IMG/VR virus record: IMGVR_UViG_3300042465_005589
Coordinates: 248,001 to 312,000 of that record
Length of the DNA stretch: 64,000 bases
Direction: 5' to 3' (one strand)
Program-made: the position numbers and the translations under genes
Notes under the pieces: generated by a model
Databases searched by the model: none
The model's input: only the letters and a program-made list of their open reading frames with translations
What the model was told of the DNA's origin: nothing
In this document: positions 9,225-62,344 of the stretch, in pieces
How positions within the stretch are numbered: the stretch's first letter is position 1
Layout: each line of letters starts with the position of its first letter

Positions 9225-9225
9225 A

Positions 9226-10176: not shown

Positions 10177-10177
10177 A

Positions 10178-37067: not shown

Positions 37068-37161
37068 TAGTTTGTCTTTTTTATTTGTAAATTTATTTTT
37101 ATTGATAAATATTATAAAAAAAACCAAAATACTTTACTTCATAAGAAGTATTTATAAATTA

Positions 37162-44760: not shown

Positions 44761-47550
44761 TTAATTAATATGTTCTTCCCAACCAGGTTCCGCTAACTCA
44801 TAAATGTATTCAGAACTAACACCAACTCTATCCCAAAACTTTAATTCTAAGTCGGTTATTGTTAACAAGTCCTCAATTGTGTCTTGGTCACCCTCTTTAT
44901 TTGGAACCCCACCAATTAACTCACACTGAGTTTTAGTAAAGAATCCTCTTTCTTCAGGGTTAGCAATTAACAAACTTTCTCTTAATTCTTTATTGAAAAC
45001 AATCAACAATGGTTCAACCTTTTTATTAAATGTTGAGATTGCTCTTGGAACATTATATTCTCCGGTCAAATCAGGATTATTTTCTATTTCAGTTTGGTCT
45101 AACATATAACAATTAAGTTGAATTGTTGAGGTAGATTTATCTTCGGGTTCTACACCATTTACTGATGTAAACAAATCTAACGCTTTTTTAGTATAATTGT
45201 TTTTAGTAATTTTTTGAACATCCCCGTGAGACGCTTTAACCCCATTATTAACATAACTAATTACATCACCTAATGAAACTTTTAAATCGTGTTTGATGGC
45301 CAATTCCATATGAGCCATTCTACTCATTAACGAACCAGCTTTAGTTTTCATCCCACATCTTTTCTTATAATCTTCGACAGACAATTTAACTCTTGCTCTT
45401 TGAGCGATTTGTTTTAATGGTATTTGTTGGTCGTATATTCTTTGGTGATATTCAAAATACCATTCAACAAATTCCTGACCTTTTCCTTCCAATAATAATC
45501 TCACCCCTTTATCTAAAAACACCTCAATATACAGTGGCAATTTTTTAGACTTAATTGAATTTCCGGTTAATTTAATTTTACCGTTAGATTCCATTGTTGC
45601 GTAATTCTTTCTACTTAAATTAATACAAGAATCCCAAGTTCCATCACAATCTAACCCCATCTCACCTTTCATAAACAAATCGTTGTATTCTGCGGTGTCT
45701 GCGTAATAACCTCTATATTCTTGACCCTCTTTAACTAACCAATTTAATCCTTTTCCAATATAAACTCTATCTTCAACACCGCCTTCAGGTAAACTAAAGT
45801 TGACACCATCCGTATCAAGTACCAAAGGTGTATATCCTCTCTTAACAAAGTATTTCACCATCTGACGAAGATATTGTCTTCCGGTACAAGTAATTCTTTC
45901 TCCACTATTCATTTCGCCCCACTCATAAACGTGTGGTGCCGATAATCCACCAAACATAGAGTTAATAAAGATTTTTAATGGTAATTGTTTTCTATCATAT
46001 GAAAGTGATTTTTTAGAATCAGTTGACTTATACTCAGACGCCAAGTTTTTATACATAATACGAGCGTTACGGAAATAAGTTAACATTCCTTTCATTCCAC
46101 CCATAACATCACACTCAGGGAACACGTCGTGAACTAACTGAATAGATGGGTATAGGGAAGAGTAATCGAGTTTTAGTACGTTGGTAGAGTAACCTACCTT
46201 AAGTAGTCTTGAAAGTCCTCCTACGAAGTCTGTCTTCTCTTCTTTTGCGGGAATAGCCAAATTGTTCTTGAATGACCAAGCTAACATAATCATTCTCCAT
46301 AGAGTTGCGGTTCCCATAGTCGAAACTCTTTCATAGGTTGTTGGTACCATCGATGCTAAAAGAAACGTTCCCTGATTGAATTCATCATCCACTGTTAACG
46401 TTTCCTCTAAATCGTCATCAAGATATCTCTCCACAACATTATCCCCTGTTACTTTAATATATTTTCCGGGAAATCTTGTGTCTAAGTTATTAAAGTCCGG
46501 ATTGTCGGCTTTCTTATATTTTCCATTTTCAACATTTAACCAATACTCCTCTTTTTTAGCATACATTGGTCCAATTTCTAAGTGGTCAATATAAACTCGG
46601 TCGGGAGCTTCCGCTTTAATGTATTGAGTAATATATTTAAGACCTGCTGACTTAATACTTGAATTAATCGCCTGAGCTCTACGAACGGAGTGAATAATAT
46701 CTATAATGTTATAACCCCATAATTGAGTTTGTGAGAATCTCTCCACCTCATTAGCAAGTTTTAACATACCATCCTTTTGAGATATAGGTCTTGCCGGGTT
46801 TAGTGATTTAGCAATCTTTTTGATGTCTAAGTTAAGAGCTTTACATCTCTCGAATATCCAAAACCAGTCAAAGTTCGCTGAATTATATCCACCGATGATA
46901 GATGGTTTAAGTTCGTCAATAATGTTGAAGAACTCCACCAAACCTCTTCGTTCTTGGTCTTCGTCGGCACACTCAATAACTTTTTGATATCCTTTATTTG
47001 TTTTGATTCCAATCATAAATATACGACCATCTTTAGGTTCTAAAGCGGTCGTCTCCAAGTCAAATCCGAGTCGGGTGATGTCGTTATACTCTTCATATCC
47101 TTTGAATAATCTTTTTTCTCTTGAAATAAGGAATTGTTCTACCGGTGGAAGTACCGTTAATTTACCTTTTGTTTTTTCTCCCCACGGGTCTACACCACCA
47201 TCTCTGAAGAATTGGATAAGTGAACGATACCCTTTCATTGACTTAACCATAAACTTAAGACCTTTTTCTAATCTCTCATTACCTTTGGTTTCTAATTTCT
47301 CAATGATGATACCATGTTTCTTCATCGCCTCTTTTTGTTGGTCTTTAGATTTTGAATAAAAATTCAAATCTCTTAAATCCCCAACCCAAGCAAATGCCGT
47401 AAATGTGTCTTTTTTGATTATCTTTCCCTGACCAGGGATTTCTTTAATTTTGTAGATAGCGTCTGACGCGTAATCATACTCGATAGCAACGATGTGCTCT
47501 TCAGGGTCATTCCCCTCAAGGAATGCTTTAATTTCTTCTTGTGTTACCAT
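44761..47550 (-). CDS. Family B DNA polymerase with 3'-5' exonuclease
   Basis: FDLET, GYNSANFD, DYSSLYPSI, KIFINSMFG, DTDG, KNYA motifs. Confidence 0.95.
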   Translation of the reverse strand: MVTQEEIKAFLEGNDPEEHIVAIEYDYASDAIYKIKEIPGQGKIIKKDTFTAFAWVGDLRDLNFYSKSKDQQKEAMKKHGIIIEKLETKGNERLEKGLKFMVKSMKGYRSLIQFFRDGGVDPWGEKTKGKLTVLPPVEQFLISREKRLFKGYEEYNDITRLGFDLETTALEPKDGRIFMIGIKTNKGYQKVIECADEDQERRGLVEFFNIIDELKPSIIGGYNSANFDWFWIFERCKALNLDIKKIAKSLNPARPISQKDGMLKLANEVERFSQTQLWGYNIIDIIHSVRRAQAINSSIKSAGLKYITQYIKAEAPDRVYIDHLEIGPMYAKKEEYWLNVENGKYKKADNPDFNNLDTRFPGKYIKVTGDNVVERYLDDDLEETLTVDDEFNQGTFLLASMVPTTYERVSTMGTATLWRMIMLAWSFKNNLAIPAKEEKTDFVGGLSRLLKVGYSTNVLKLDYSSLYPSIQLVHDVFPECDVMGGMKGMLTYFRNARIMYKNLASEYKSTDSKKSLSYDRKQLPLKIFINSMFGGLSAPHVYEWGEMNSGERITCTGRQYLRQMVKYFVKRGYTPLVLDTDGVNFSLPEGGVEDRVYIGKGLNWLVKEGQEYRGYYADTAEYNDLFMKGEMGLDCDGTWDSCINLSRKNYATMESNGKIKLTGNSIKSKKLPLYIEVFLDKGVRLLLEGKGQEFVEWYFEYHQRIYDQQIPLKQIAQRARVKLSVEDYKKRCGMKTKAGSLMSRMAHMELAIKHDLKVSLGDVISYVNNGVKASHGDVQKITKNNYTKKALDLFTSVNGVEPEDKSTSTIQLNCYMLDQTEIENNPDLTGEYNVPRAISTFNKKVEPLLIVFNKELRESLLIANPEERGFFTKTQCELIGGVPNKEGDQDTIEDLLTITDLELKFWDRVGVSSEYIYELAEPGWEEHIN

Positions 47551-47613
47551 AAATATATTTTTTAGAATGACATATTAGCACTGACTTTAAATCAGGTTTG
47601 TCTTGTTTCTATA

Positions 47614-47642
47614 AATATAAAAGATAATAATTAATAAATCAA
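47614..47642 (-). promoter_or_regulatory. Sigma70-type promoter for the DNA polymerase
   Basis: TTGATT-N17-TATATT, followed by a structured leader. Confidence 0.5.
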
Positions 47643-47649
47643 TTTTAGA

Positions 47650-48495
47650 TTAATGACATGGAAGTAAATTGTTAAAATTAACTATTCCGGTAATAACAGA
47701 ATTAAACACTGAAATTATTTGATACCCATTTATTTGAGTAACATAATTACCATCGTTAATTAATGATATGGTTTGCCCATTAGGGTCACTATAAATTGTT
47801 GCACCTATTTGTAGTGGAGTGTACATATAATAATTCTCACCACCAATTATATAAAAAGGAGGGGCCAATACATAATCTTCAACAATACATTTAATTAGTT
47901 GAGGACCATCAGCAATAAAATCAATAAATAAATGACCAATATCATCATAAATACCTGAACCCATATTAACTTCAGATAATACAGGAATTGTTGTTGTTGT
48001 AGTTGTAGTATGATTAATTGTGGTAGTAGTTGTCGTACAAGGACAACATTCTGTAGTTGTTGTTGTAGTATAAGGACCATTGATACAACAAGGGAATTCT
48101 GACACATAACAACTATCGTAAACTAAATCGTCTGCAATAAACGAATCTTGTACATTTATAAATAAATCTTCCCTAATTGGTAATATAAGAACTCCATCTG
48201 AATTTCTTAACATAAATTGACCAGCGTATCTACCAACTCTATTTGTATCTCTCGGAGTAAATTGATAATATATATAATATTCAGGACCAGCATTTAAATC
48301 AACAAAAGTTTTTTCAACAAACCCCGCAGGTCTTGAACTTATTTTTGGAATACCGGTTTCTACGTCAACCATTGAGAAGAAAATGGCAGATTCTTCAATC
48401 ATATCCATAAACTTATTATAGTCACTTCTTCCGTCTTTAACTACTTGTAATTTTAATACCGGTAAGGTTGCGTTTTTCTTTATAAAAAAATCCAT
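47650..48495 (-). CDS. Putative virion appendage protein with BppU-like N-terminus and poly-Thr/Cys linker
   Basis: FFIKKNATLP...YQFTPRDT..GRYAGQF; YTTTTTTECCPCTTTTTTINHTTTTTTTIP; TATTTAT upstream. Confidence 0.55.
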   Translation of the reverse strand: MDFFIKKNATLPVLKLQVVKDGRSDYNKFMDMIEESAIFFSMVDVETGIPKISSRPAGFVEKTFVDLNAGPEYYIYYQFTPRDTNRVGRYAGQFMLRNSDGVLILPIREDLFINVQDSFIADDLVYDSCYVSEFPCCINGPYTTTTTTECCPCTTTTTTINHTTTTTTTIPVLSEVNMGSGIYDDIGHLFIDFIADGPQLIKCIVEDYVLAPPFYIIGGENYYMYTPLQIGATIYSDPNGQTISLINDGNYVTQINGYQIISVFNSVITGIVNFNNLLPCH

Positions 48496-48578: not shown

Positions 48579-49682
48579 TTATAATATTGTTATGTCATCT
48601 AATTTACCCCAGTCAATTTCGCCATACCATTCATAAGTGTGGTATAATTCAAAATTAGGTTGTTTAATGTTAATTATGAAAAAACTATTTTTATTTGATT
48701 GAAATTTATGAATAAATTCCTCATCACCCATCTTAACTTTAAAAATATGGTCAAGAAACTGTTGGTCGGTTTCTTCCAATCCCCAATAAAATTCAACATT
48801 CAAAAATTTGTCAAATTTGTACATTTTAATATTTAATGGAATATTTTCCCCTTTAAATTGTACAAAATATTTTTTATTAAAAACTTCATCACCTTGAGAC
48901 ATTTCTATGTAATCTAAATAAGATTTGTAGGTATCTCTAACTGCCGGATAACTTACAAAATGTAAACATTCTACTTTAGAGATGTCTATATTTTGAAAAT
49001 ATGGTATTCTATGTTTTTCTTCGTCTAATGGGACGTATCTACCATCTTTTAAAAACATATGAGCATATGCCGATTGTTCAATCCATGAAGGAAAATAATT
49101 CACACCTTTTCCAATGAGGTTAGTTAGGGCAAATTCAAGAGAATTTATATTATAATAATCTTCAGATGGTATATAAATAAGTCCGGTATTAACTTTTTCA
49201 GGAACTAACACTTCACTTTTAGGTTCATTAAAACAATATGAACTTTGACAATCTGGAAAATAAAATGGTGTATTTGTATTTATTAAATTAATAACATTAT
49301 CGGGTCTTCTAATAAAAAGAAGGTCGGTATCCATACCCAATATTTTTTTAGATTTAGAAAAAAAGAAATAATCAAAGGTTTTAATTTTATGCCATAAATT
49401 TATTGGGTTATTCCCAAGACGGTAACTCAAACAATTAGGATAATTCTTAATATATTGTTCAATTTCTTTATCAGCATCCGCTCGTTTAATTATTATTACA
49501 TTTCTTATATCTGATAATAATTCAATATCCGAATCAGTTAAAGACCCGTCATCGTGAAGATAGACCGGAAGAGATTTAAATTCTTCAAACTTCTGTAATG
49601 ATTTAAAATTATTTATTGCTAATAATATATCTCTATTACATATTAGTGTGTGTATTTCTAATCCTTCAAAATTTTTATTCAT
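48579..49682 (-). CDS. GT-A fold glycosyltransferase (GT8-like) with C-terminal YHTYxWYG domain
   Basis: HDDGSL, MDTDLLF (DxD), VNTGL, EQSAY, HFV. Confidence 0.7.
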   Translation of the reverse strand: MNKNFEGLEIHTLICNRDILLAINNFKSLQKFEEFKSLPVYLHDDGSLTDSDIELLSDIRNVIIIKRADADKEIEQYIKNYPNCLSYRLGNNPINLWHKIKTFDYFFFSKSKKILGMDTDLLFIRRPDNVINLINTNTPFYFPDCQSSYCFNEPKSEVLVPEKVNTGLIYIPSEDYYNINSLEFALTNLIGKGVNYFPSWIEQSAYAHMFLKDGRYVPLDEEKHRIPYFQNIDISKVECLHFVSYPAVRDTYKSYLDYIEMSQGDEVFNKKYFVQFKGENIPLNIKMYKFDKFLNVEFYWGLEETDQQFLDHIFKVKMGDEEFIHKFQSNKNSFFIINIKQPNFELYHTYEWYGEIDWGKLDDITIL

Positions 49683-49705: not shown

Positions 49706-50479
49706 TTATCCGGCGATATTCCATGGTTTAGTTCCATTAAGTTTCTCTTCATAATTTGAAATAAAAATTTCATTTATTTTTGAAGATAACGGACTAACAC
49801 CATTACATGTTATCCCACTATTATAACTGGCAATTGACATAGACGAGCCTTCACCGGAACCAATTGTTTCTAAATAGTTGTGACGAATATCAAACTCTTC
49901 AGTAAACACAGATAGGTCATCCCATATTTTAAAAAAATTTTCTTCAGTTCCTCTGTCTTTTTTAATAATCCATTTACCTTCCAAATAGTGTTCTATATAA
50001 TCTTCAGGATGACCTTCATGAAACACTTTTTTTAATTTAAAACCATTTTTTTCCGCAAAATCAATACCTTCTTGACCATATTTAGTATTTCTTCTACCTT
50101 GTACTTCACAAGTACTAACATCGTCTGAACAATATGTGAACCCTATATTACCAAACGTTGCAAAAATATGTAGACCAGAGTTTATATCTGATAAAAAATC
50201 AATGTTATCAGTATCTTTAATAAAGACATCAGCATCTAAAAAAACTGCAGTGTCATAGTATTTTAAACATTCTTTCATCACCACTTTTTTTTCATGAAAT
50301 GAAAAATATGGTTTAGTATATTCTATTACTGTTAACAAATTATTTGGTGTATAATGTTCCGGAGAATTAGTCATTACAAAAATATGATGTCCCATATCAT
50401 TTATTTGTTTAATTAATGAATCTCCAAATGTTACATATTTTTCACCATATGTTAATGTACAAAACGCAAAATTACTCAT
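49706..50479 (-). CDS. GT-A fold glycosyltransferase
   Basis: GEKY, VMTN, VFLDADV (DxD); probable start MSNFAF by ATGA overlap. Confidence 0.65.
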   Translation of the reverse strand: MSNFAFCTLTYGEKYVTFGDSLIKQINDMGHHIFVMTNSPEHYTPNNLLTVIEYTKPYFSFHEKKVVMKECLKYYDTAVFLDADVFIKDTDNIDFLSDINSGLHIFATFGNIGFTYCSDDVSTCEVQGRRNTKYGQEGIDFAEKNGFKLKKVFHEGHPEDYIEHYLEGKWIIKKDRGTEENFFKIWDDLSVFTEEFDIRHNYLETIGSGEGSSMSIASYNSGITCNGVSPLSSKINEIFISNYEEKLNGTKPWNIAG

Positions 50480-52206
50480 ATTTCCTCTATTAATGTCCAA
50501 TCTTTATCCCCATACCAATCATAAGTGTGGTAAATTTTAATTTTATCTTTTTTATCAAAAAATAACTCATTTGTTTTTTCACTATTAAAGTGATATACAA
50601 CATCATTAATTTTAAACTCATGGTCTAAAAACTCAACATTATTTTTTAAATTCCAATTAAAATTTAAAACAAATAGATTATCATTTAATTCAAAAATTGA
50701 ATAACTTAAATCTATCTTGTGTTCTTTAAATTGAATGTCTGATACCTTTTTTGAAATTAGTTTACCCTCACTTAATTGTACTGTTTTTCTATCAGGAAAA
50801 TTTTTAATATAATCACTAATAAACCCACCATAAAAGTTATATTTAATATCTTCACCAAGTTTATTAGATATGTTGTGTGAATTAATTTTAAGTCCGCTTT
50901 TAGCTACACATAAACCAACAATATTACCCTCACCAACACCTATTTTATCCACCCCATTAATCATTTCATGAGCATCTAAAGATGATGATAATTCTTTCCA
51001 TGTATCTAAAAAAACTTTCCATTTATTTTCTTCTTTTGAAACAATTAAAACACCTTCTTGATAGTGATAAGCATCATTTATTGGGATATTTAATTTTTCG
51101 GATATACTTAACGCTAATTCACCATAACCCACAACCCTATTAGTAATGTCTTTACTTTCAAAAAAACCTCCGGAAGGTCTTGATATTAATCCCCAATCCC
51201 AAGATGGGTGAAATCCTGGTTTAATTATTCTAATTAAATTGGTGTAACAATTTTTATAATTTTTAAAAAATAATCTACAATCAGAATCAACATATACAAC
51301 AGCATCTTCATATTTAAATCCCTCTTCAAAACAAATTAATTTATCATTATATGAGAATTTTTTATTAGGATAATCTACTAATATAACATTATCTAAAGAA
51401 TCATAGAATTCTTTTTGGTCTGTAACTATTAATATTTTTTGTTTAAAATAATTTAAATCAAAAGCCAATTTAACCGCGTTTTTATTAGCTGTTTCACCAT
51501 GAGCAATAGTTGTAAAAATATAGTTTTGTTTTTTATAGTTTTTTTTACAACTATTATTTCCTTGTATATCTGTTGTAAAATCATTTTTAACTTTTACAAT
51601 TCTTTCATTTGAAACATACACATTGAATTCAGATAATCTAATATATAATGCGGTATCAATTTGATTATCTATATTAGTAAGTTTTTCGATTAATTTTTTT
51701 GCACCATTTGGGGATATTATTAAAGATGGTAAACACGTTACAATACCTTTAGGTATAGATAAGTTTTTACTAAATGGATGTTTTTCTACATCAGTATCAC
51801 CATGACCTAAATAACAATAATCAAAATCATTAGGTAATTCAGATAAAATCATCTTTAATTTATCATCAAATGAATTATCAATTTCCACATCATCTTCAAA
51901 AGTTATTGCAGGAGAATCTAATTCTGATATTTTTTGAAATAAATTAAGATAACTCATTAAAACCCCCAAACCACCTTGAGTCATTGATAATCCCCAAGCG
52001 GTTACTGTATCCATTAAAATATCTTGGATTGCATTTTCACTTAATATACCTTCTTTTAAAGTTCTTGGATTTATAGTAGACCCATCAACTGCGTCAAACC
52101 TTTGATAAATATTTTTTAAAATAGTACTTTTATTTAATTGATTTTCTATAAATAACTTCCTATCCGTTCTTTTTTCTAAATTAATATAAAAACAATGTTT
52201 TAGCAT
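50476..52206 (-). CDS. Bifunctional glycosyltransferase: GT25 + GT-A domain + C-terminal YHTYxWYG domain
   Basis: YINLEKRTDRK, RFDAVDG, FEDD, GAKKL, QID (GT25); second domain VYVDSD. Confidence 0.8.
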   Translation of the reverse strand: MLKHCFYINLEKRTDRKLFIENQLNKSTILKNIYQRFDAVDGSTINPRTLKEGILSENAIQDILMDTVTAWGLSMTQGGLGVLMSYLNLFQKISELDSPAITFEDDVEIDNSFDDKLKMILSELPNDFDYCYLGHGDTDVEKHPFSKNLSIPKGIVTCLPSLIISPNGAKKLIEKLTNIDNQIDTALYIRLSEFNVYVSNERIVKVKNDFTTDIQGNNSCKKNYKKQNYIFTTIAHGETANKNAVKLAFDLNYFKQKILIVTDQKEFYDSLDNVILVDYPNKKFSYNDKLICFEEGFKYEDAVVYVDSDCRLFFKNYKNCYTNLIRIIKPGFHPSWDWGLISRPSGGFFESKDITNRVVGYGELALSISEKLNIPINDAYHYQEGVLIVSKEENKWKVFLDTWKELSSSLDAHEMINGVDKIGVGEGNIVGLCVAKSGLKINSHNISNKLGEDIKYNFYGGFISDYIKNFPDRKTVQLSEGKLISKKVSDIQFKEHKIDLSYSIFELNDNLFVLNFNWNLKNNVEFLDHEFKINDVVYHFNSEKTNELFFDKKDKIKIYHTYDWYGDKDWTLIEEI

Positions 52207-52212
52207 ACTTTA

Positions 52213-53460
52213 TTATAAATTACCGGTTATTCTATCACGCCAACCTTTTGACGTACTATATGGCCATACAACCCAATATTTTGGTTTTGATGTTGTTTGG
52301 AAATCTCTCCAAACTTTACAATATCCGTCATGGTCTTTCATCATAGCATTTATCTCATTAATATCGGCATCTTTTCTATAAAGAGTTTCATCATTTTCAT
52401 TATGAAATGCTACAACCCAAAATTCATAATCTTTTTCCGGTACTTGTTTAAATGAGATATCGATACAATGTTTGAAAATACTCGCAAAACTTGATAACCA
52501 TTCTTCTTCCGTCTCATATATGGTAGGGTTTGGTGCGTATTTTTTATCTAAAGTATATTGTTGGACAGCTCTATTTGAAAATTTAAGACCTGAATAAATT
52601 TCATAATCTTTTAATGTTCTTTCAGTTCCAAATCCATACTTACTAAAATCCATAGTAACTTCTTCACCGTCCATTCCAAAAAGCTGTCTATTCTTTTTGT
52701 GAGATAACTCATTCTTTTTACCCCACTCTTTATCATCATCCCATTGTTTGGTTCTACCCTTACGAGTATATTCGTGCCAAATAACGGTCTTATGTGGGTG
52801 GAATAAATCATATCCGTGAGTGAATGCTCTAACAGCAATTGATATTTCTTCCCCGTGAAAATAAAATTCAGGGTCGTGTTGAACCTCCACACTAAATTGA
52901 CCTAATGTGAATGCCATGTGAGCAGAATAAAAACGAGAAGTGATTGGTTGTTTTAATTTTTCCCAACCAGGTATTGTTTCAGGTAAGAAGAATACCGCAC
53001 CTTCAGGAATGAATCTATCAAAAGACATTCTCCACGGCTCTTTAACTCTACCTGCCGGGTCATTCTCGGGGTCAAATGATGAAACATACCCCGTTAACAA
53101 AGGTTTCTTAAATCCTTTCTTTTGAAGTTGTTTAATCATTTTGATTAAGGTAGTATCCCAATCTTTTTCAAATCTCATATGAGAATCTATTTGAAGTGTA
53201 TACTCCTCACCATCATATAATTGTTGTACTTGATTTCTTGCCCAACAAACACCTTTAGCGTCGGAATACAAAACATCCTTAACTCTAAATCGTTTATCTT
53301 TTTTAAATTTTTCTAAATTATCAAACCCATCTTCAGGGTGATATTGACGACATATACCTATTCTTAAGTTTTTAGGTCTTTTAGCATTTTCAATCATGCT
53401 ATCAAGTGTCGGGATAAGCTGGGGGTCACGATAGGAGGCTATCTGTACAAATATTTTCAT
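52213..53460 (-). CDS. GT60-like polypeptide alpha-GlcNAc transferase (Gnt1/OGNT family)
   Basis: IFVQIASYRD, GVCWAR, LQIDSHMRFEKDWD, FHGEE..IAVRAFTHGYD, WHEY, YGFGTERTL..Y. Confidence 0.85.
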   Translation of the reverse strand: MKIFVQIASYRDPQLIPTLDSMIENAKRPKNLRIGICRQYHPEDGFDNLEKFKKDKRFRVKDVLYSDAKGVCWARNQVQQLYDGEEYTLQIDSHMRFEKDWDTTLIKMIKQLQKKGFKKPLLTGYVSSFDPENDPAGRVKEPWRMSFDRFIPEGAVFFLPETIPGWEKLKQPITSRFYSAHMAFTLGQFSVEVQHDPEFYFHGEEISIAVRAFTHGYDLFHPHKTVIWHEYTRKGRTKQWDDDKEWGKKNELSHKKNRQLFGMDGEEVTMDFSKYGFGTERTLKDYEIYSGLKFSNRAVQQYTLDKKYAPNPTIYETEEEWLSSFASIFKHCIDISFKQVPEKDYEFWVVAFHNENDETLYRKDADINEINAMMKDHDGYCKVWRDFQTTSKPKYWVVWPYSTSKGWRDRITGNL

Positions 53461-53599
53461 TTATCTCTTGTTTTACACAAAAGATAATAATCTATAATCA
53501 AATATAAATAATATTATTTTAATAATTTATTAAGGGGATGAAACAAAAGTTGATGGATTTATTAACCTAATTTTAAGATTATAAGTTTATTGATTTTAG

Positions 53600-55528
53600 T
53601 TAGTTTATAAAAGAAAGAAATTTTTTATTACTACTACTGTAAAGTACCCAAGAAGCACCATAGTTAGAAGATATTTGAGTTTGAAACGCAATTGTAGTTC
53701 CAAGCATATATTGTCCAGAATTAGATATATCTGTTTTGATAATAGAACTACCAAAAGTATTCGTAGTCCAACTAACACCAAAATTATTTGTGGTAATAAC
53801 TCTATTATTAGTAGCACCTACTATTCCATATCTTCCATCATAACTTAACTTAAGGTCTTCATTAAAATCTTGACTAACAATACTCATTATTGACCAAGTT
53901 GCACCAAAATCAGTACTTCTGTAACTATTTCCAACTGCTGAAACTAACATCATATATAATCCATTTCCTGATACTGCAACACCTTGAAAATTACTAGAAT
54001 TTGCGGCTGATTGCGAAGGAAAAATATTTAATGTTATATTTGTAAAAGTTATTCCATAATTTGTAGATAGTAAAACATATTTTAATGAACTTGAATCATA
54101 ACCTGCAATAATAACATATTGACCATCCCACGATACACTAGATTGGATAATTAATGTAAAAGCCACAGGAAATGATGCAGGACTCCAACTTGTTCCAAAA
54201 TCACCACTTCTTAAAAGAGTGCCTCCTGATTCAACATACATATATTGTCCATTTTTAGATATTGAAGTCTCCCCAATAAAACCAGAACCCACCCCAATAG
54301 GTGTTGAGTAAGAATTACCATAATCTGAAGATATCTTTACTTGTAAAGGAGAAGTTGCTCCTGCAGCCGCTATAGAGTATTGGTAATTATCGGAAGCATT
54401 TATTCCATAATTTGTAGTGACGCCAACAGACGTTAGTTGACTTATTTCAACAAGTGTATCATCATATATTCTAAAAAATGGAGATGAATTAGATGTACCT
54501 AACATATCCCCTACTCCAAAAACAGGTGTAGGTATTGATGTTGGAGTAGGTGTTGGAGTCGCAGTTGAGGTTGGTGTTGCCGTTGGTGTAGGTGTAGATG
54601 TCGGAGTAGATGTCGGAGTTGATGTTGGCGTCGCAGTCGGTGTTGGTGTGGATGTCGGAGTAGATGTTGGTGTTGATGTTGGTGTTGCCGTTGGAGTTGA
54701 TGTTGGAGTCGCAGTTGGTGTAGGTGTAGGTGTTGGAGTCGCAGTTGGTGTTGCCGTTGGTGTAGGTGTTGGTGTAGGTGTAGGACAAGGATTTAAAATT
54801 TGACAAGTATTAATATCCGGTTGACTATTTAATAAAATGTATGAATACTGATTCGTTGAGGTTATTGGTGATATTGATGTTACACAACCAACATATCCAC
54901 TACTTTGAACATAATAAACCCCTGACAATGGAGAATAAGATGTAGGAATATTATAAACTATAAAAGTGTTTGATGGGTTACAACTATCTTGGAAATACCC
55001 CACAATAGGTGCTAATGTTTGTGTTGGAGTAGTTGTTGGTGTTGCAGTAGGTACTGGTGCACAAGTATTATCAACACACACCTCATTAATCAGAATGTTT
55101 ACCCCCACATCAGCAGAAGGTAATCTACCGCAATAATATAAGGTAGTCCCTGATTGAATAACACTGTTTAACACAACGTTATTACATTGGGTTAAACTAA
55201 AGTTTAAAGTTCCCGAAGTTGTATTTTCAAATGATATACAATTACAAACAACAACCATTGTTGGAGTCGGAGTTGGTGTTGTTGTTGGAGTTGGTGTTGG
55301 TGGTAATGGACAACTTTCTAATAAAAATTCTTCACACCCTATTGAATCAGTCACAACAACTAAAACCTGACTAGCACCTTCTAATTGAGAAGGGATTGGA
55401 AGTTCTAATGTTGGAGGAACAGAAACAACACCGGTTGCAACCACATAACAATACGTTAATGTTAAATCACATATTGATATATCAAATGGTGAGTGTCCGT
55501 TTAAACTGGTTATTTCTATTACTTGCAT
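53600..55528 (-). CDS. Mucin-like Pro-Thr repeat protein with Cys-rich modules and C-terminal Asp-box (BNR) beta-propeller; putative fibre/adhesin
   Basis: Three PT tracts and six SxDxGxxW-type boxes. Probable start MQVIEITS at 55528 after TATTTAT. Confidence 0.75.
54525..54785 (-). repeat. Coding low-complexity repeat (TPT[P/A/S])n, about 85 aa
   Basis: Degenerate 12-nt units such as gttggtgtaggt and gtcggagtagat. Confidence 0.9.
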
Positions 55529-55632
55529 TACAATAAATATAGTTAGAATTATTTTACCATAAATACTTAACAATATTAAAGTTTACTATGGAACTTTATT
55601 AGTAATTTATTATTTTTATAATAAAAAAAAAT

Positions 55633-58600
55633 ATGTCGTTAAAGATTAACCATTACGATTTTATTGAAATTGGTACGTCAGATTTTGATACTTTAATTGA
55701 AACCTCCAATGACAATACTGTCGGTATTAGTATTGAACCTATAAAATATTACATAAATAGATTACCTGATAAACAGAATATTATTAAAGTCCAAGCGGCA
55801 TTATCAACAACAGATGGTGAAGTCGATGTGTACTATATTGAAGATTCTAAAATAGAAGAGAATAACTTACCTTGGTGGGTTAGAGGAAGTAACTCAATAA
55901 ATAATCCTCACCCTTTTGCTATTAAAGAATTAGGTGAAGAATTATACAATAGTTTGGTAACTATTGAAAAAGTTCCAACAATTAGTTGGGAAACATTAAT
56001 TAAAAGATATGATGTTGGTTCAATCGGTTATCTAAAGATTGATACTGAAGGTCACGACCATATCATCTTCAGAGATTTTTTAAACTATTGTAAAGAACAT
56101 TCATTTCCAATCCCAAACAAAATAACACTAGAATATCACGATGGTGTGTCAAACAAAGTTGAGATTGATAAATTAATATCGGAATTACCTGAATATCAAA
56201 TTATCAAACACATTAGTGATATTACATTAATGAAACCTCTAATACCGAGAGTAATACATCAAACATATAAAACTAATGATTTACCAACAGAAATAAGTGA
56301 GGTAGTTCAAAGGTTAAAAGATATGAATCCAACTTTTGAGTATAAATTCTACAACGATAACGATTGTGTTGAATTTATTAAAGAAAATTATGATGAAGAA
56401 ACTCTTAATCTTTATTTAAGTATTAACCCAAATTATGGGTCGGCTAAATCTGATTTTTTTAGATACCTTTTAATGTATAAAGTTGGTGGTGTTTATTTGG
56501 ATATTAAAAGTTGTACTACTAAACCTTTGGAAGAAGTTTTATTACCAACCGATGAATATCTATTAACTCATTGGGAAGGATTGGATTGGGCAGATGAATT
56601 AAAATATTATTTTGGCGAATTTCAAAATTGGCATATTATCTGTAAACCAAATCACCCATTTTTAAAAAGGGTAATTGAAATTGTTAAAGACAATATTAAA
56701 AATTATATTGGTGGGTCGGATAAATATTCTGTGTTAAGATTGACAGGTCCAATCGCTTATAGTAAAGGAATTATTGAACTTATATCTCAACATAAGAAAA
56801 ATAGTGTTGATTCACCCGTTAGAGAATTTTTATTAGAAAACGAGATTGGGTTACAATATATGTCAACCACAATACATCATCATAATCTAATTGATAGTTC
56901 GTATTCAAAAAGAGAACCTTTAATTTTAAAAGATAAGGTTGAGAAATCATATCTATTATATGCAACCGAAAACTATTTGGATGTTGCAAAGATGTGTATT
57001 AAATCAATCCGAGAATATAGTGATTTACCAATTTTCTTATATCTTATTAATTCTAATAAAGTTGTGGATATTAAAGATGTTGCAACCATAAATTGGAATG
57101 TAGAATTAGTTGATGATAATTCTGATAGATACATTCAAGAGGGTGACAATTTTTACATTAATAGAACCAATAAAACGATTTATAACATCTTAATACAAAA
57201 ACCATTAATCACTAAAGACGTTTTATCTAAATACACTAAAACGGTTGCATTTATTGATTGTGATTCAATTGCAACACCATATGTTGATAGAATCTTTGAC
57301 TTATACGATAATGATAAAGATTACCCTTATTTTGTTGAAGGGATTTATGATTTTCTACACGTAGGTGAACGAGGTGGTGCTATGACTAGAGATGATATGT
57401 CAACCACGTTGGAACATCCGGCGTGTGAATTATTTAATGTTAATCAGTATGTTAGAGAAAAATACCGACAAACAGGTTATTATGTTGCAAATGAAAAATG
57501 TATTGATTTTTTATACGAATGGTATCAAATGTGTTCTCACCCTGAAGTATTAAATAATATACCATATTATGCGGCATATAATGAGGAGACCATCCTAAAT
57601 GTGTTATTGTGGAAAAAATTAATATTTGATGGATTACCTTACATTTACGCTAACGGAAATTTAGAATTGATTGATAATATCTATTCAAACTACAATATTA
57701 GTGAAGAAAGTTTATGGATTAAGATTCCAAATAAGAAAGATGATTTGTTATTTATTCACGGAGAAAAGAACATTTTAGAAATGGGTAAAATAATATCAAA
57801 AATTAAAAACCATAATAAAGAAAAAATTAAAGTATTATTCTTGGCACCACATCTGTCAACCGGAGGGATGCCATCATTCCTATTAAAACGAATCGAATCG
57901 TTATTAGAATATTATAAAGATAAAACGGAATTATTTGTTGTGGAATATTCTAACCATAGTGACCACTATGTGGTTCAAAAAAATAGAATTAAAAAATTAA
58001 TACCTCCATCACATTTTTGGACGTTAGGTGAAGATAAAAACGAATTAAAGAAAATTATTGAGGAAAATTATTTTGACATAATTCACTTGGATGAAATGAT
58101 TGAAGATTTTGATGCTCATAATAAATTATCAAATGAGTTAATGAATTTCATTTATAAAAATGACCGAACTTGGAGAGTAGTGGAAACTTGTCATAACGTT
58201 GTATTCCAACCGGAAAAAGATAAAGTGTTTCATCCTGAAGCATACGCTTATTGTTCACCATTTCATAAAGAATCAACATTCTTGAATATGCCATCGTATG
58301 GTGAAGTAATTGAATTTCCGTATAACCCTACAATTGTAATAGATAAAGAAAGTAATAAAGAAAAATTAGGTTTAGACCCAAATAAAATTCACATTATAAA
58401 TGTTGGATTATGGACACCAGGTAAAAATCAAGAAGAAGGTGTTGAGATTGCAAAATTAGTTGAGGGTATTCACCCTGAATTAGAATTCCATTTCATTGGG
58501 AATCAAGCACCTAACTTTCAAGATTATTGGATACCAATTATGAAAGATTTACCATCAAACGTTAAAGTATGGGGGGAGAAAGATAATGTTAGTGATTTTA

Positions 58601-59976
58601 TGTGTGCCGCTGATGTATTGATGTTTAACTCAACTTGGGAATGTAATCCGTTAGTATTAAGAGAAGGTATTTCTTATGGATTAAAAATTTTAGCAAGAAA
58701 CTTACCTCAATATATGGATATGTTTACACCTTATATAACACAATTGTCAGGTGATATTTTTGACATGAAAAATCAACTTTTAGATTTAATTAAAGATGAA
58801 AGTTATTACGAATTCCCAACATATAGAACAAAAGAATTTGCTGAAAAAAATTACGAGTTATACCAAAAAATATTAAACGAACCAATTAAAAAACAAACCA
58901 TGATAGATAATGAAGTACAAATATTCCAACATTTTGTTAAAGAACCATTTTTAGAAATAAAAGGAACTGGAGACAAAGATTACAATGTTAAATTCTTTGA
59001 TGAAGAAGGTATTTGTCATTATGAGAATACCATAAAACCAAATCATTGGGTTAAATTAAATAGAAGTTATTACACCAAATGGAGAGCAGTTGTTACTCGA
59101 GATAATGAGGTAATTTATGATAACACTATGGATTTAACAAATAAAAGAGTTTACATATCTTTCGATAGTAAATCTTTAGGTGACTCGATTGCTTGGATTC
59201 CTTATGTTTTAGAATTTAAAAAGAAACACGATTGTAAAGTTATTGTATCTACATTTTGGAATCATTTATTTGAAAATGAATATCCTGAAATTGAGTTTGT
59301 TGTACCGGGAACGACCGTACATAATCTTTATGCTATGTACACAATCGGATGGTTCTACAATACAGATAAAGAACCTGTATTACCAAACACAATACCATTA
59401 CAACAAACAATTACTAACATATTAGGATTAGAATTTAAAGAGATTAAACCTAATATACACAACACCATTCACCCAAGACCTTATCAAAAGAAATATGTTA
59501 CCATAGCAACTAACTCAACAGCAGGGTGTAAATTTTGGACAAGAGAAGGATGGCAATCACTAATTAACTATCTTCATAATTTAGGATATAAAGTAATAAA
59601 CGTATCCAAAGAAGATAATCCGTTTGAAAATGCAAACAAGATTAAAAACACCTCAATTCATCACACAATGAATGTAATTCACCATAGCGAATTCTTTATC
59701 GGATTATCTAGTGGTTTATCTTGGTTAGCTTGGGCGTTAGGTAAACAAGTTGTAATGATTTCTAACTTTACAAATGAGGAACATGAGTTTATGTTTAATT
59801 GTACTAGAATTGTAAATCATTCTGTTTGTAACGGATGTTGGAATAAACCTGAATTTACCTTTGATAAAGGTGATTGGAATTGGTGTCCTGTTAATAAAGG
59901 AACTGAAAAACAATTTGAATGTCATAAATCGATAACACCGGAAATGGTTATTAATCAAATACAACATTTACTATAA
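55633..59976 (+). CDS. Five-domain enzyme: FkbM methyltransferase + GT32 + GT-A + GT4 + AAH/TibC-like heptosyltransferase
   Basis: FIEIG/LKIDTEGHD; IPRVIHQT/SDFFRY/GGVYLDIK/LTGP; FIDCD; HLSTGG/KNQ/ECNPLVLREG; SLGDSIAW/FIGLSSGLSWLAWA/CNGCW..C..C. Confidence 0.85.
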   Translation: MSLKINHYDFIEIGTSDFDTLIETSNDNTVGISIEPIKYYINRLPDKQNIIKVQAALSTTDGEVDVYYIEDSKIEENNLPWWVRGSNSINNPHPFAIKELGEELYNSLVTIEKVPTISWETLIKRYDVGSIGYLKIDTEGHDHIIFRDFLNYCKEHSFPIPNKITLEYHDGVSNKVEIDKLISELPEYQIIKHISDITLMKPLIPRVIHQTYKTNDLPTEISEVVQRLKDMNPTFEYKFYNDNDCVEFIKENYDEETLNLYLSINPNYGSAKSDFFRYLLMYKVGGVYLDIKSCTTKPLEEVLLPTDEYLLTHWEGLDWADELKYYFGEFQNWHIICKPNHPFLKRVIEIVKDNIKNYIGGSDKYSVLRLTGPIAYSKGIIELISQHKKNSVDSPVREFLLENEIGLQYMSTTIHHHNLIDSSYSKREPLILKDKVEKSYLLYATENYLDVAKMCIKSIREYSDLPIFLYLINSNKVVDIKDVATINWNVELVDDNSDRYIQEGDNFYINRTNKTIYNILIQKPLITKDVLSKYTKTVAFIDCDSIATPYVDRIFDLYDNDKDYPYFVEGIYDFLHVGERGGAMTRDDMSTTLEHPACELFNVNQYVREKYRQTGYYVANEKCIDFLYEWYQMCSHPEVLNNIPYYAAYNEETILNVLLWKKLIFDGLPYIYANGNLELIDNIYSNYNISEESLWIKIPNKKDDLLFIHGEKNILEMGKIISKIKNHNKEKIKVLFLAPHLSTGGMPSFLLKRIESLLEYYKDKTELFVVEYSNHSDHYVVQKNRIKKLIPPSHFWTLGEDKNELKKIIEENYFDIIHLDEMIEDFDAHNKLSNELMNFIYKNDRTWRVVETCHNVVFQPEKDKVFHPEAYAYCSPFHKESTFLNMPSYGEVIEFPYNPTIVIDKESNKEKLGLDPNKIHIINVGLWTPGKNQEEGVEIAKLVEGIHPELEFHFIGNQAPNFQDYWIPIMKDLPSNVKVWGEKDNVSDFMCAADVLMFNSTWECNPLVLREGISYGLKILARNLPQYMDMFTPYITQLSGDIFDMKNQLLDLIKDESYYEFPTYRTKEFAEKNYELYQKILNEPIKKQTMIDNEVQIFQHFVKEPFLEIKGTGDKDYNVKFFDEEGICHYENTIKPNHWVKLNRSYYTKWRAVVTRDNEVIYDNTMDLTNKRVYISFDSKSLGDSIAWIPYVLEFKKKHDCKVIVSTFWNHLFENEYPEIEFVVPGTTVHNLYAMYTIGWFYNTDKEPVLPNTIPLQQTITNILGLEFKEIKPNIHNTIHPRPYQKKYVTIATNSTAGCKFWTREGWQSLINYLHNLGYKVINVSKEDNPFENANKIKNTSIHHTMNVIHHSEFFIGLSSGLSWLAWALGKQVVMISNFTNEEHEFMFNCTRIVNHSVCNGCWNKPEFTFDKGDWNWCPVNKGTEKQFECHKSITPEMVINQIQHLL

Positions 59977-60653
59977 TGGATTATAATAATTTTGATTGGG
60001 GATGGATGGGACAAAGTGAAGAAGGTTTGTTTCATAAAGAACAAATAACTCAAGAAACATTTGTTGATAAAATATATGAAAAGTTTTTTGAAGTTTCTGA
60101 AGGTGATATTGTTTTAGATTTTGGTGCTAGTGTTGGACCATTTACGTATAGTATTTTATCAAAAAAACCAAAACACGTATATTGTCTTGAACCAAGTGAA
60201 TTTGAATTTCCCACATTAGTTAATAATACAGTTGGTCATCCGGTAACACCAATATTGAAGGGTGTCTCAAATACCAACACATATACTGAGGGTAATGACA
60301 TTTATGGTGGTTCAAAACAAATGGAAGGAATTACTTTTAAAAAACTTTGTGAGTTATATAATTTAAAAACCATAGATTTTTTAAAAACAGATTGTGAGGG
60401 TGGTGAATACGATATTTTTAATGATGAGAATTTTGAATTTATTAAAAATAATGTCAAAAAAATCACCGGTGAGTGGCATTTAGGTACACCAATTTTAAAA
60501 GAAAAATTTAAAAAATTCAGAGATACTTACTTACAATACTTTATAAATGTTGAGGTGTACTCAATAGATGGTGTTAATGTAAAATGGAATTTAATGTCTG
60601 ACAATTTTTTAGAACACTATACAGAAATAATAATACACATATATAACGTTTAA
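59976..60653 (+). CDS. FkbM-family methyltransferase
   Basis: VLDFGASVG, CLEP, IDFLKTDCEGGEY, GEWH. Confidence 0.88.
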   Translation: MDYNNFDWGWMGQSEEGLFHKEQITQETFVDKIYEKFFEVSEGDIVLDFGASVGPFTYSILSKKPKHVYCLEPSEFEFPTLVNNTVGHPVTPILKGVSNTNTYTEGNDIYGGSKQMEGITFKKLCELYNLKTIDFLKTDCEGGEYDIFNDENFEFIKNNVKKITGEWHLGTPILKEKFKKFRDTYLQYFINVEVYSIDGVNVKWNLMSDNFLEHYTEIIIHIYNV

Positions 60654-60657
60654 TTAA

Positions 60658-61476
60658 ATGAAACAAATATTTTTTAACTCTTCCCTACCTAGAAGTGGAA
60701 GTACATTAATTCAGAATTTATTAGCTCAAAATCCTGAAATTTACTCAACACCAACATCAGGGTTGGTAGATTTTGTAATCGCTTGTAAAAACAATTACAA
60801 TCACTCACAAGCATTCCAAGCTCAAAATCAAGATGAAATGACCAAAGCCTTTGTCGATTTTTGTCAAGATGGTATGCAAGGTTATTTTAAAAGACTTACT
60901 GATAAACCAATCGTAATCGATAAAAGTCGAGAATGGGGAATCAATTATGGTTTATTGGAAATGCTACAACCAAACCCAAAAATTATTTGTATGGTTAGAG
61001 ATGTTAGAGCTGTCTATAGTTCAATGGAAAAGAATTTTAGAAAAAACCCTCATAGAGAAAATGGGATTCAAAGACCGGCAGAATTAATTGGGACAACCTT
61101 AAACAAACGTGTTGATATTTGGGCTAGTGGTGTTCCTGTTGGTGTTGCAATTGATAGGTTATTAGATACCATTCAACAAGGTATTGCCGAAAAAATGTTA
61201 TTTATTCGTTACGAGGATTTAATGAGTAATCCTGAAGAAGAAATGAGTAGAATATACAATTATTTAGAACTACCATATTATGAAGGACATGACTTTGAGA
61301 ATATATCTCAACTAACTCATGAAGATGATAGAGTACATGGGATATTTGGTGACCACCAATTAAGACCTAAATTTGAAAGAAAACCGGATGATTACATGGA
61401 AGTGTTGGGGTATGAGATATCAATGAACATTAAAAATCATTATAAATGGTTTTATGACTATTTTGGATACGTATAA
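60658..61476 (+). CDS. PAPS-dependent sulfotransferase
   Basis: 5'-PSB SLPRSGSTL, DKS, 3'-PB MVRDVRAVYSS, RYEDL. Confidence 0.9.
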   Translation: MKQIFFNSSLPRSGSTLIQNLLAQNPEIYSTPTSGLVDFVIACKNNYNHSQAFQAQNQDEMTKAFVDFCQDGMQGYFKRLTDKPIVIDKSREWGINYGLLEMLQPNPKIICMVRDVRAVYSSMEKNFRKNPHRENGIQRPAELIGTTLNKRVDIWASGVPVGVAIDRLLDTIQQGIAEKMLFIRYEDLMSNPEEEMSRIYNYLELPYYEGHDFENISQLTHEDDRVHGIFGDHQLRPKFERKPDDYMEVLGYEISMNIKNHYKWFYDYFGYV

Positions 61477-61488
61477 AAAATTTTAATT

Positions 61489-61941
61489 ATGGCAATATAT
61501 TGGTTTACAGGTCAGCCCGGAGCAGGTAAGACCACATTAGCAAAACAACTTAAAGATTATCTACACCCAAGTAATGTAATGCTTGTTGATGGAGATGACA
61601 TTAGAGATGTGTTTCAGAATAAAGATTACTCTGAAAATGGCAGAAGAAAAAATATTGAGAAAGCACAAGACATCTCATTATTTTTAGATTCAAAAGGATT
61701 TGATGTAATAGTTTCATTAGTATCTCCTTATAAAGACCAACGTGATGAATTTAAAAACAAACATAATGTTTTAGAGTTTTACATTCACACCGAAGATATT
61801 AGAGGAAGAGAAGATTATCACGTATCTAACTATGAACCACCAACTGAAAATTTTGTGGATGTGGATACAACAAATGTTATTGAACAAATCTCTATAGGAA
61901 TAATTATAAATAAAATTAATGAATATAAATTAAATGGATAA
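61489..61941 (+). CDS. cysC: Adenylylsulfate (APS) kinase
   Basis: WFTGQPGAGKTT, VDGDDIR, YSENGRRKN, VSLVSPY, YEPP. Confidence 0.9.
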   Translation: MAIYWFTGQPGAGKTTLAKQLKDYLHPSNVMLVDGDDIRDVFQNKDYSENGRRKNIEKAQDISLFLDSKGFDVIVSLVSPYKDQRDEFKNKHNVLEFYIHTEDIRGREDYHVSNYEPPTENFVDVDTTNVIEQISIGIIINKINEYKLNG

Positions 61942-62344
61942 TTGGGAAAGAAAAACACACGTACAAGCAGCATTCGCTTCATCATCGTCAAATAAAAAAT
62001 ATTCAATGTTTGTAGGTAGATGGCAACCGTGGCATCATGGTCATAGAGCATTAATTGACCAACAATTGAATAGAGATAAAAATATCCTACTATGTGTTAG
62101 AGATGTTGAAATTGATGATAAAAATCCGTTTTCAACAGAATGGGTTATTGAAAACTTAAACAAAGAATTAAAAGACCTAATTGATGAAGGAAGATTAGTG
62201 ATTCAGGTTATTCCGGATATAGAAAGTGTTAATATTGGTAGAGGTGTTGGATATGATGTTTATGAACATTTCCCTCCTGAGGATATTAAAAACATTTCTG
62301 CAACAAAAATTAGAGAACAAATGAAAAAAGACGGTAAACTATAA
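61934..62344 (+). CDS. Small HIGH-family nucleotidyltransferase (candidate minimal ATP sulfurylase)
   Basis: GRWQPWHHGH and ISATKIRE; coupled to cysC. Confidence 0.75.
   Translation: MDNWERKTHVQAAFASSSSNKKYSMFVGRWQPWHHGHRALIDQQLNRDKNILLCVRDVEIDDKNPFSTEWVIENLNKELKDLIDEGRLVIQVIPDIESVNIGRGVGYDVYEHFPPEDIKNISATKIREQMKKDGKL

Follow-up and report, generated by a model that had tools for sequence, protein, structure and literature searches.

A GT60 glycosyltransferase and a Pro-Thr stalk protein at the head of a hypervariable glycan island in a jumbo phage: a candidate system for mucin-type O-glycosylation of fibre-like proteins

We analysed a stretch of viral DNA of 64,000 nucleotides (the window), which corresponds to bases 248001-312000 of the 318,164-bp virus record IMGVR_UViG_3300042465_005589 of IMG/VR, a single contig of 31% G+C that is estimated to be complete. 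The tail sheath, baseplate J, ribonucleotide reductase, DnaB-like helicase and family B polymerase encoded in the window and the rest of the genome, together with the genome size, mark the virus as a jumbo myovirus. The locus considered here comprises two adjacent genes, one for a glycosyltransferase (GT) of the GT60 family and the other for a protein with a long proline- and threonine-rich (PT) stalk, which together form the head of a larger, hypervariable glycan island. Comparative genomics suggests that the two might be related as enzyme and substrate. The features of the pair are as follows:

52213-53460, minus strand: GT60 glycosyltransferase (P0001), 415 amino acids (aa), recognized by PF11397, phrog_24687, motif and predicted fold
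53600-55528, minus strand: PT-stalk protein (P0002), 642 aa from the ATG (residues 16-657 of P0002)
55310-55528, minus strand: N-terminal module of the PT-stalk protein, about 72 aa, starting MQVIEITS and bearing two Cys pairs
55259-55303, minus strand: first PT linker, 15 aa
55022-55051, minus strand: second PT linker, 10 aa
54536-54784, minus strand: main PT tract, 83 aa (residues 264-346 when numbered from the TTG), the candidate acceptor of O-glycosylation
53603-54520, minus strand: BNR/Asp-box beta-propeller of seven blades, the C-terminal 306 aa, a distal binding or enzymatic domain

A preliminary description of this DNA had placed a GT60 enzyme directly downstream of, and in the same orientation as, a gene for an Asp-box propeller on a PT stalk of 85 aa. 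Its gene order and orientation are borne out, both genes lying on the minus strand with the PT gene upstream and 139 nt between them. The open frame of the PT gene spans 53600-55573 and has an upstream TTG at 55573, but every homologue starts at the ATG at 55528, precisely the gene boundary given in that description.

By sequence, motif and predicted fold, P0001 belongs to the GT60 family, as had been proposed. It matches the Pfam family PF11397 ('GlcNAc', GT60 of CAZy) with an E-value of 9.4e-72 and a score of 242.8 bits (cut-off 21), and the phage family phrog_24687 over its full length (E 1.5e-168); it is the sole GT60 copy in the genome. The GT27 and GT60 families share a signature in which a DxH motif replaces DxD and is accompanied by a C-terminal His (PMC7185993). 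In P0001 these elements are D92-S93-H94 and H229, and an alignment of 44 two-domain homologues showed D92, H94, E204, E205, R211 and H229 to be invariant. The structural model is confident (predicted local distance difference test, pLDDT, 95.3) and contains a GT-A catalytic domain at residues 2 to about 300, the first beta-strand of which begins already at residue 3. The protein is therefore predicted to lack a signal peptide or membrane anchor, and so should encounter phage proteins in the host cytoplasm. Its best structural match among reviewed proteins is the Dictyostelium Skp1 N-acetylglucosamine (GlcNAc)-transferase Gnt1 (E 1.4e-26, template modelling (TM) score 0.66, 26% identity, residues 2-325), with polypeptide N-acetylgalactosamine (GalNAc)-transferases ranking next; the best-matching solved structures are polypeptide GalNAc-transferases of the GT27 family. 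The C-terminal part of the protein is beta-rich (strands at residues 325-414) and beyond residue 325 lies outside the Gnt1 match; a Pfam scan of residues 295-415 recovered no domain. The GT60 family is set apart from GT27 by the absence of a C-terminal ricin-type lectin domain. Among sequence searches against solved structures, a single GT60 sequence yielded matches to T7 RNA polymerase alone, which were judged spurious, and a GT60 profile yielded no match. Taken by its intact motif and predicted fold, P0001 is apparently a catalytically competent GT60 enzyme, and we propose it as a candidate initiating polypeptide O-N-acetylhexosamine (HexNAc) transferase. Modelling the enzyme in complex with 45 aa of the PT tract returned no answer (score 0.00), which weighs neither way. 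Elsewhere in the family, metagenomic proteins of 1600-2500 aa (P0168, P0169, P0170 and P0175) contain up to four GT60-like stretches per chain.

The PT-stalk protein is modular throughout, with the N-terminal module, the first linker, a small module, the second linker, a third module, the 83-aa PT run and the propeller following one another; the two further small modules also contain Cys. Searches with the N-terminal module returned viral clusters only, along with a small beta-sandwich fold; the module is common to 36 distinct GT60-adjacent proteins of 148-2641 aa. It is probably the part that docks to the virion. The PT run, which accords with the stalk length first described, sits in a 91-aa stretch containing 42 Thr, 29 Pro, 9 Ser and 7 Ala. 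Its DNA has a period of 6 nt with 42.8 copies, yet matches among the copies reach 66% and the codons are mixed, suggesting that the run has been kept as an amino-acid composition rather than produced by recent slippage. Seven open reading frames (ORFs) in the 318-kb genome encode PT tracts, and by far the longest of these tracts is that adjoining the GT60 gene. The other six, with tracts of 16-36 aa, all lie outside the window (genome positions 7639-8133, 8151-10376, 47247-47930, 96021-97241, 219441-220343 and 231344-233809) and are candidate additional substrates; none matches Pfam, and PHROG gave a match for that at 7639-8133 alone, to a family without an assigned function.

The C-terminal propeller is likewise as first described. 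It has six Asp-box-like motifs (S/T-x-D/N-x-G-x-S/T-W/Y/F, at residues 415, 456, 503, 553, 595 and 635), and profile searches relate it to xyloglucanases of glycoside hydrolase family 74 (GH74; 3e-23), sortilin Vps10, Ycf48 and sialidases. An AlphaFold model (pLDDT 87.9) shows seven blades and resembles seven-bladed propellers and the BNR hydrolase 3b7f with TM scores of 0.68-0.74. We take the likeness to sialidases and GH74 enzymes to hold at the level of the predicted fold and the repeat. Eight close homologues of the propeller were found, each preceded by a Thr/Ser/Pro (T/S/P)-rich stalk and each with a different N-terminus, and remoter homologues carry the tail-fibre domains Collar (PF07484) or Peptidase_S74 (PF13884). 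P0002 itself matched no Pfam or PHROG structural family, and a tblastn search of 50,697 phage records with the PT protein returned no match.

Contigs encoding relatives of this locus number 390 in IMG/VR; we examined the best 80 together with eight assembly loci and the window, spanning 75-100% identity in GT60. Among the 64 distinct proteins encoded directly upstream of, and co-oriented with, GT60 in this set, 58 have a PT tract (14-651 aa), a count that does not stand for 58 independent events because the adjacency is largely inherited synteny. These upstream proteins vary in length between 114 and 3315 aa, and at least 28 clusters can be distinguished among their C-termini. A conserved N-terminus, a stalk and a variable C-terminus together describe what would be a fibre-like protein that docks by a constant end and has an exchangeable tip. 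In certain related lake phages (L064, L065 and L068) the PT proteins directly upstream of GT60 reach at least about 3315 aa and are cut by the end of the locus. Downstream of GT60 the relatives show about 50 gene arrangements drawn from 74 families, among them FkbM and CmcI methyltransferases, GT10 and GT_PLOD. The retention of GT60 at 75-100% identity ahead of continually reshuffled genes fits a constant initiator combined with variable tailoring enzymes, the usual layout of surface-glycan loci. Before the polymerase gene, the island is usually closed by an HtrL_YibB-like gene (77/79 loci) and a member of the family F1 (69/79 loci). Of 47 distinct F1 members, 29 pass a T/S/P threshold of 10-of-12, and five more, including the copy at 47650-48495 of the window, have poly-Thr runs just below it. 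Related phages have a gene for a carbonic-anhydrase-like LCIB_C_CA protein between island and polymerase (e.g. L007:15840-16913), which is absent in this phage.

The two-domain form of GT60 is widespread in bacteria, with 4,702 cluster representatives (E < 1e-3) and at least 565 matches in reference genomes. The preliminary description had cast the family as best characterised in protists: the kinship with protist enzymes stands, Gnt1 being the best structural match, whereas the notion of a protist-like oddity does not, in view of this bacterial spread and the grouping of the phage enzyme with copies from Bacteroidota. The bacterial copies also offer a comparison beyond the phage clade. PT tracts of at least 16 aa were sought within 6 kb on either side of GT60 in 80 loci (893 kb in total) and, as a control, in 37 regions of 20 kb (724 kb) drawn at random from ten of the genomes concerned. 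They were present in 24 of the GT60 loci (49 tracts) and in none of the control regions (Fisher p = 4e-5), and in the GT60 tree the PT-adjacent loci are scattered across ten clades or more. Scans of whole genomes (4.5-7.9 Mb) showed such tracts to be rare and found the sole or near-sole exact (PT)6 tract 0.6-4.2 kb from GT60: in a Ralstonia genome of 6.0 Mb the single long PT tract lies 1.1 kb away, and genomes of Paraherbaspirillum, Paraburkholderia and Achromobacter (4.7-7.9 Mb) have a single exact (PT)6 tract each, at 2.6-4.2 kb from GT60. Both PT tracts of an Acidimicrobiaceae genome are within 3 kb of GT60.

The carriers of these tracts are diverse. In Burkholderiales, VgrG spike proteins (Phage_GPD + Gp5_trimer_C) of the type VI secretion system (T6SS) end in tails of (PT)17 to (PT)60, and their genes have one or two GT60 genes at a distance of 1-4 kb. 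Small PT-rich proteins are encoded directly beside GT60 in Acidimicrobiaceae, alphaproteobacterial and Vicinamibacterales genomes, i.e. in three unrelated phyla. Another carrier, a large protein, combines PT linkers with an Rv2525c-like domain. A protein made up of fn3, a PT linker and a BNR_2 propeller is encoded directly upstream of GT60 in an Opitutaceae genome, and its design appears close to that of the PT-propeller protein of the window. The loci in question are:

L148, 8267-11131, minus strand: PT-tailed VgrG
L227, 3401-5764, plus strand: PT-tailed VgrG
L121, L163, L169 and L175: further PT-tailed VgrG loci
L139, 7608-8243, plus strand: small PT-rich protein
L140, 7548-8129, plus strand: small PT-rich protein
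L153, 4460-6001, plus strand: small PT-rich protein
L164, 4598-5950, plus strand: fn3-PT-BNR_2 protein of Opitutaceae

The GT60 gene of Ralstonia is preceded by a TssA-like (ImpA_N) gene and a fimbrial-like gene. Glycosylation of T6SS spikes is accordingly raised as a possibility by these neighbourhoods. The N-termini of the small PT-rich proteins appear, judged by eye, to be twin-arginine (RRxF) signals, and signals of this type beside GT60 would suit glycosylation in the cytoplasm followed by export of the folded protein.

Only four cultured phages have a GT60 homologue, namely the jumbo phages XacN1, Xoo-sp13, CM1 and RAS14, at 46-49% identity; that of XacN1, ORF334, is 48.6% identical to the enzyme studied here. 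In the tree, the copies of XacN1 and Xoo-sp13 are sister to a Burkholderiales clade. Purified XacN1 virions display at least two Schiff-stained glycoprotein bands, the proteins of which were not named and which the authors credit to the two glycosyltransferases of the phage, ORF334 among them (PMC5852040). These stained bands provide an experimental hint of virion glycosylation. Genome-wide, the PT pattern has 110 matches in XacN1 and 78 in Xoo-sp13; the reversed control gave 3 and 1, respectively. ORF325 of XacN1 (region 203370-213311), which follows the baseplate wedge genes and bears a PT tract near its C-terminus, borders the GT9-carbamoyltransferase-GT60 cluster of that phage.

The island around the pair in the window extends over at least 16 kb and encodes no fewer than eight GT domains along with FkbM methyltransferases, a sulfotransferase and an adenosine 5'-phosphosulfate (APS) kinase. 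Apart from the pair, its genes are:

47650-48495, minus strand: F1-family protein (P0317), 281 aa, a second candidate substrate at the other end of the island
48579-49682, minus strand: 367-aa ORF of unassigned function in Pfam scans, a member of the variable cassette
49706-50500, minus strand: 264-aa ORF (P0318), placed by BLAST in one family (F33) with P0003
50476-52206, minus strand: protein with a GT25 domain and a further GT-A-like region (P0003), from a Pfam scan
55633-59976, plus strand: 1447-aa fusion of an FkbM methyltransferase, a DXD sugar-binding domain (Gly_transf_sug), GT4 and GT9, diverging from the PT gene
59976-60653, plus strand: FkbM-type methyltransferase, from a Pfam scan
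60658-61476, plus strand: sulfotransferase (PF13469, 1.5e-22)
61489-61941, plus strand: APS kinase (PF01583, 5.5e-17)
61934-62344, plus strand: nucleotidyltransferase/ATP-sulfurylase-like ORF, weak (PF01467 3e-05; PF01747 0.0033, below the cut-off)
62612-63310, plus strand: GIY-YIG/NUMOD3 homing endonuclease, within the island between the sulfation genes and the GT9-like ORF
63307-63999, plus strand: GT9-like ORF, weak (E 2.6e-4), running off the end of the window

P0318 has no Pfam match; judged by eye, it may be a GT-A-like protein with a DxD-type 'DAD' motif. P0317 consists of a conserved N-terminal domain, for which there is a lead to BppU_N-like domains, Thr-rich tracts (poly-Thr in this copy, PT in many of its relatives) and a small domain at the C-terminus. 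The APS kinase would feed 3'-phosphoadenosine 5'-phosphosulfate (PAPS) to the sulfotransferase, and by the gene content of the module at 60658-62344 the phage may make its own PAPS for glycan sulfation. This phage is without the HtrL_YibB-like gene that its relatives otherwise conserve, and P0003 shows no similarity to that gene. A scan for promoters and terminators at 47.4-56.0 kb gave counts not above those of shuffled sequence, so that the operon structure cannot be read from it.

The phage itself belongs to a clade that is abundant in lakes, the locus being near-identical in at least 23 lake-water metagenomes. In the GT60 tree its copy clusters with those of Bacteroidota, several close copies being in Saprospiraceae bins, and this grouping hints at the phylum of the host. 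The nearest non-viral copies (61-72% identity; loci L099-L103 and L105) come from bins of Saprospiraceae, Lewinellaceae and other Bacteroidota, one of them on a contig of 230 kb; such copies could stem from phage contigs that were wrongly binned, or else could point to the host. A 2025 account of aquatic jumbo 'moraphages' with Bacteroidota hosts noted four core groups of glycosyltransferases, with a GT60/PT link absent (PMC12619734). The window further contains two giant ORFs of 2300 and 1671 aa (16969-23871 and 24190-29205, both on the minus strand) with no Pfam match, and a tail sheath protein (33741-37127, minus strand) that at 1128 aa is unusually long and has its sheath domains solely at the C-terminal end.

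Assembling these observations, we consider it reasonably probable that P0001 is a soluble polypeptide O-glycosyltransferase that starts glycans on the PT-tract threonines of fibre-like proteins, and that the rest of the island decorates them. The following course of events is envisaged: 1) The GT60 protein would be made as a soluble, Mn-dependent enzyme in the cytoplasm of the infected cell. 2) It would place the first sugar on threonines of the PT tract, by analogy with the family most likely alpha-GlcNAc from host uridine diphosphate (UDP)-GlcNAc. 3) Its prime substrate would be the upstream protein with its docking module, PT stalk and seven-bladed BNR propeller, while the Thr-rich F1 protein encoded at the opposite end of the island, and probably the other PT proteins of the genome, would serve as further substrates. 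4) The glycan would be extended by the GT25 and GT-A-like proteins and by the four-domain methyltransferase/GT fusion. 5) FkbM methyltransferases would add methyl groups, and the sulfotransferase would add sulfate with PAPS supplied via the phage APS kinase. 6) With a set of tailoring enzymes that varies from phage to phage, the glycan would become lineage-specific. 7) The outcome would be a stiff, extended, protease-resistant and glycan-coated stalk that holds out the propeller, presumably on the virion. The PT tract had been named at the outset as a plausible substrate of the enzyme: the conserved pairing, the intact motif and the bacterial enrichment are in keeping with this, and the transfer of sugar to the tract is what we infer from them.

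Several observations weigh against this reading. Six of the upstream proteins of the related phages have no PT tract, three of them complete and three cut by a contig end, and the synteny of the pair within the phage clade is mostly inherited. Neither XacN1 nor Xoo-sp13 has a PT tract within 8 kb of GT60; the nearest found in XacN1 is that of the 3313-aa ORF325, in frame and about 9 kb away. PT tracts are common without GT60. Among 151 Burkholderiaceae genomes an exact (PT)8 occurs in 39, GT60 in six and both in three, and the corresponding frequencies, 3/6 of the GT60-positive against 36/145 of the GT60-negative genomes, do not differ significantly; at the genome level this co-occurrence was therefore set aside and the proximity test alone retained. 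Four (PT)8 sites in genomes lacking GT60 comprised one linker of a DnaX-like protein (by eye) and three in no convincing ORF. Metatranscriptome contigs cover the GT60 and PT-coding stretches of relatives, not the propeller, and constitute no proof of transcription, as carry-over of DNA is possible.

Part of this evidence might be taken to mean that the GT60 enzyme modifies some other phage or host protein and that the PT tracts are plain flexible linkers, for such linkers are widespread where GT60 is missing, XacN1 and Xoo-sp13 keep theirs more than 8 kb from GT60 and three complete upstream proteins do without. We think this improbable, given that PT tracts occur beside GT60 in at least ten bacterial clades as opposed to 0/37 controls, that the only long PT tract of several genomes lies within about 4 kb of GT60, and that the characterised GT60 enzymes use Thr-rich, mucin-like sequences (PMC3769586, PMC8724618). 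A further variant keeps the tract as target and changes the residue. Gnt1, the best structural match, is directed to hydroxyproline, and Pro makes up about a third of the PT tract, so that a Gnt1-like transfer of GlcNAc to hydroxyproline might follow prolyl hydroxylation of the tract. A search of the complete phage genome for PF13640, the 2OG-Fe(II) prolyl hydroxylase family, found none, which favours Thr as the acceptor; the route would require a host enzyme, and a Thr content of 46% suits the mucin-type branch. We regard hydroxyproline as a most improbable acceptor.

The other gene families of the island invite a different comparison, with the synthesis of the lipopolysaccharide (LPS) core, of which GT25, GT9, GT4 and HtrL_YibB-like proteins are typical; this too tells against glycosylation of the stalk. 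Automatic annotation by the Joint Genome Institute (JGI) labels the GT60 relatives 'glycosyltransferase involved in cell wall biosynthesis', and a review of jumbo phages takes phage GT clusters to be modifiers of outer polysaccharides (PMC7824862). Seen thus, the island would build or remodel a glycan other than one on protein, for instance the LPS core, O-antigen or capsule of the host, which could block superinfection or keep progeny off debris, and the PT gene would merely share an inherited hypervariable region. This appears unlikely to us: the conserved enzyme at the head is a GT60, the nearest structural relatives of which all act on polypeptides; the neighbourhoods of bacterial GT60 genes are enriched for PT-tract proteins and not for polysaccharide loci; and the 16 ORFs covered by the scans from 47.6 to 64 kb include no recognised family of flippases, polymerases or lipid-carrier priming transferases.

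Initiation on PT-tract threonines, the reading that we favour, has parallels in protist mucin-type initiation, in the virion glycosylation of mycobacteriophages and in serine-rich-repeat islands, and departs from each of them in the family of the enzyme, the acceptor or the setting. A search of the literature on GT60, PF11397, PT repeats, VgrG and phages turned up no link of GT60 to phage fibres, PT tracts or VgrG. The known protist GT60 enzymes are the cytoplasmic Gnt1 of Dictyostelium, which acts on hydroxyproline of Skp1, and, in the Golgi, the mucin-type enzymes of Dictyostelium and Trypanosoma cruzi (PMC8724618, PMC3769586). The phage enzyme shares with them the Pfam family, the DxH motif and the C-terminal His; it is predicted to be soluble and cytoplasmic like Gnt1, while its proposed acceptor is Thr- and Pro-rich like the mucin substrates. 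In contrast to them it is phage-encoded, groups with Bacteroidota copies and has the beta-rich part past residue 325 that is outside the Gnt1 match, and its gene shares an operon-like island with that of the presumed substrate, both donor and acceptor being putative. Mycobacteriophages have been reported to glycosylate their virions with phage-encoded glycosyltransferases (Freeman et al. 2023, as cited in PMC12619734). There, and in chloroviruses and mimiviruses, glycosyltransferases of the virus encoded near structural genes decorate virion proteins in the host cytoplasm, and the glycan sets vary among relatives, all of which would apply here. Those systems differ in that the putative initiator here is a GT60 and that modules for sulfation and methylation are present; moreover, their acceptors are the C-termini of capsid or tail-tube proteins or N-linked sites on capsids, whereas a long PT stalk is proposed here.

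The serine-rich-repeat adhesin islands of Gram-positive bacteria use GtfA/GtfB for O-GlcNAc initiation and variable glycosyltransferases for extension; their initiator is a GT-B enzyme of the GT4 type, export proceeds by an accessory Sec system and the repeats are Ser-rich. The two arrangements are alike in a low-complexity stalk of hydroxy amino acids joined to a binding domain, a gene for a (here putative) cytoplasmic HexNAc initiator and variable glycosyltransferases. The phage differs by its GT-A enzyme of the GT60 family, its Pro-Thr tracts, the absence of export genes and release by lysis. Secreted glycoside hydrolases of bacteria and fungi have O-glycosylated PT linkers, and the sugars are thought to extend the linker and block proteases. 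A PT linker between modules is common to both cases, but in the hydrolases it is glycosylated during or after export by membrane mannosyltransferases, as against the cytoplasmic GT60 proposed here.

A broader generalization, which we find doubtful though conceivable, is that GT60-initiated cytoplasmic mucin-type O-glycosylation of PT tracts constitutes a general and hitherto unrecognised prokaryotic system, one that would coat Tat (twin-arginine)-exported PT proteins and the tips that contractile-injection machines expose, namely the fibres of jumbo phages and the C-terminal PT tails of T6SS VgrG spikes, with hypervariable cassettes that would write a strain-specific glycan code governing adhesion or recognition. 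Were the enzyme-substrate relationship to hold, an abundant clade of lake phages would make mucin-like fibre glycoproteins with methylated, sulfated and strain-variable chains, which would bear on host finding, protease resistance and diversification in these phages. GT60 homologues occur in metagenomes by the thousand. The uncharacterised bacterial half of the family would gain a function, and PT-tailed T6SS spikes and Tat-exported PT proteins may prove to be glycosylated in the cytoplasm. Eukaryotic mucin-type initiation would thereby be tied to a prokaryotic and viral counterpart.

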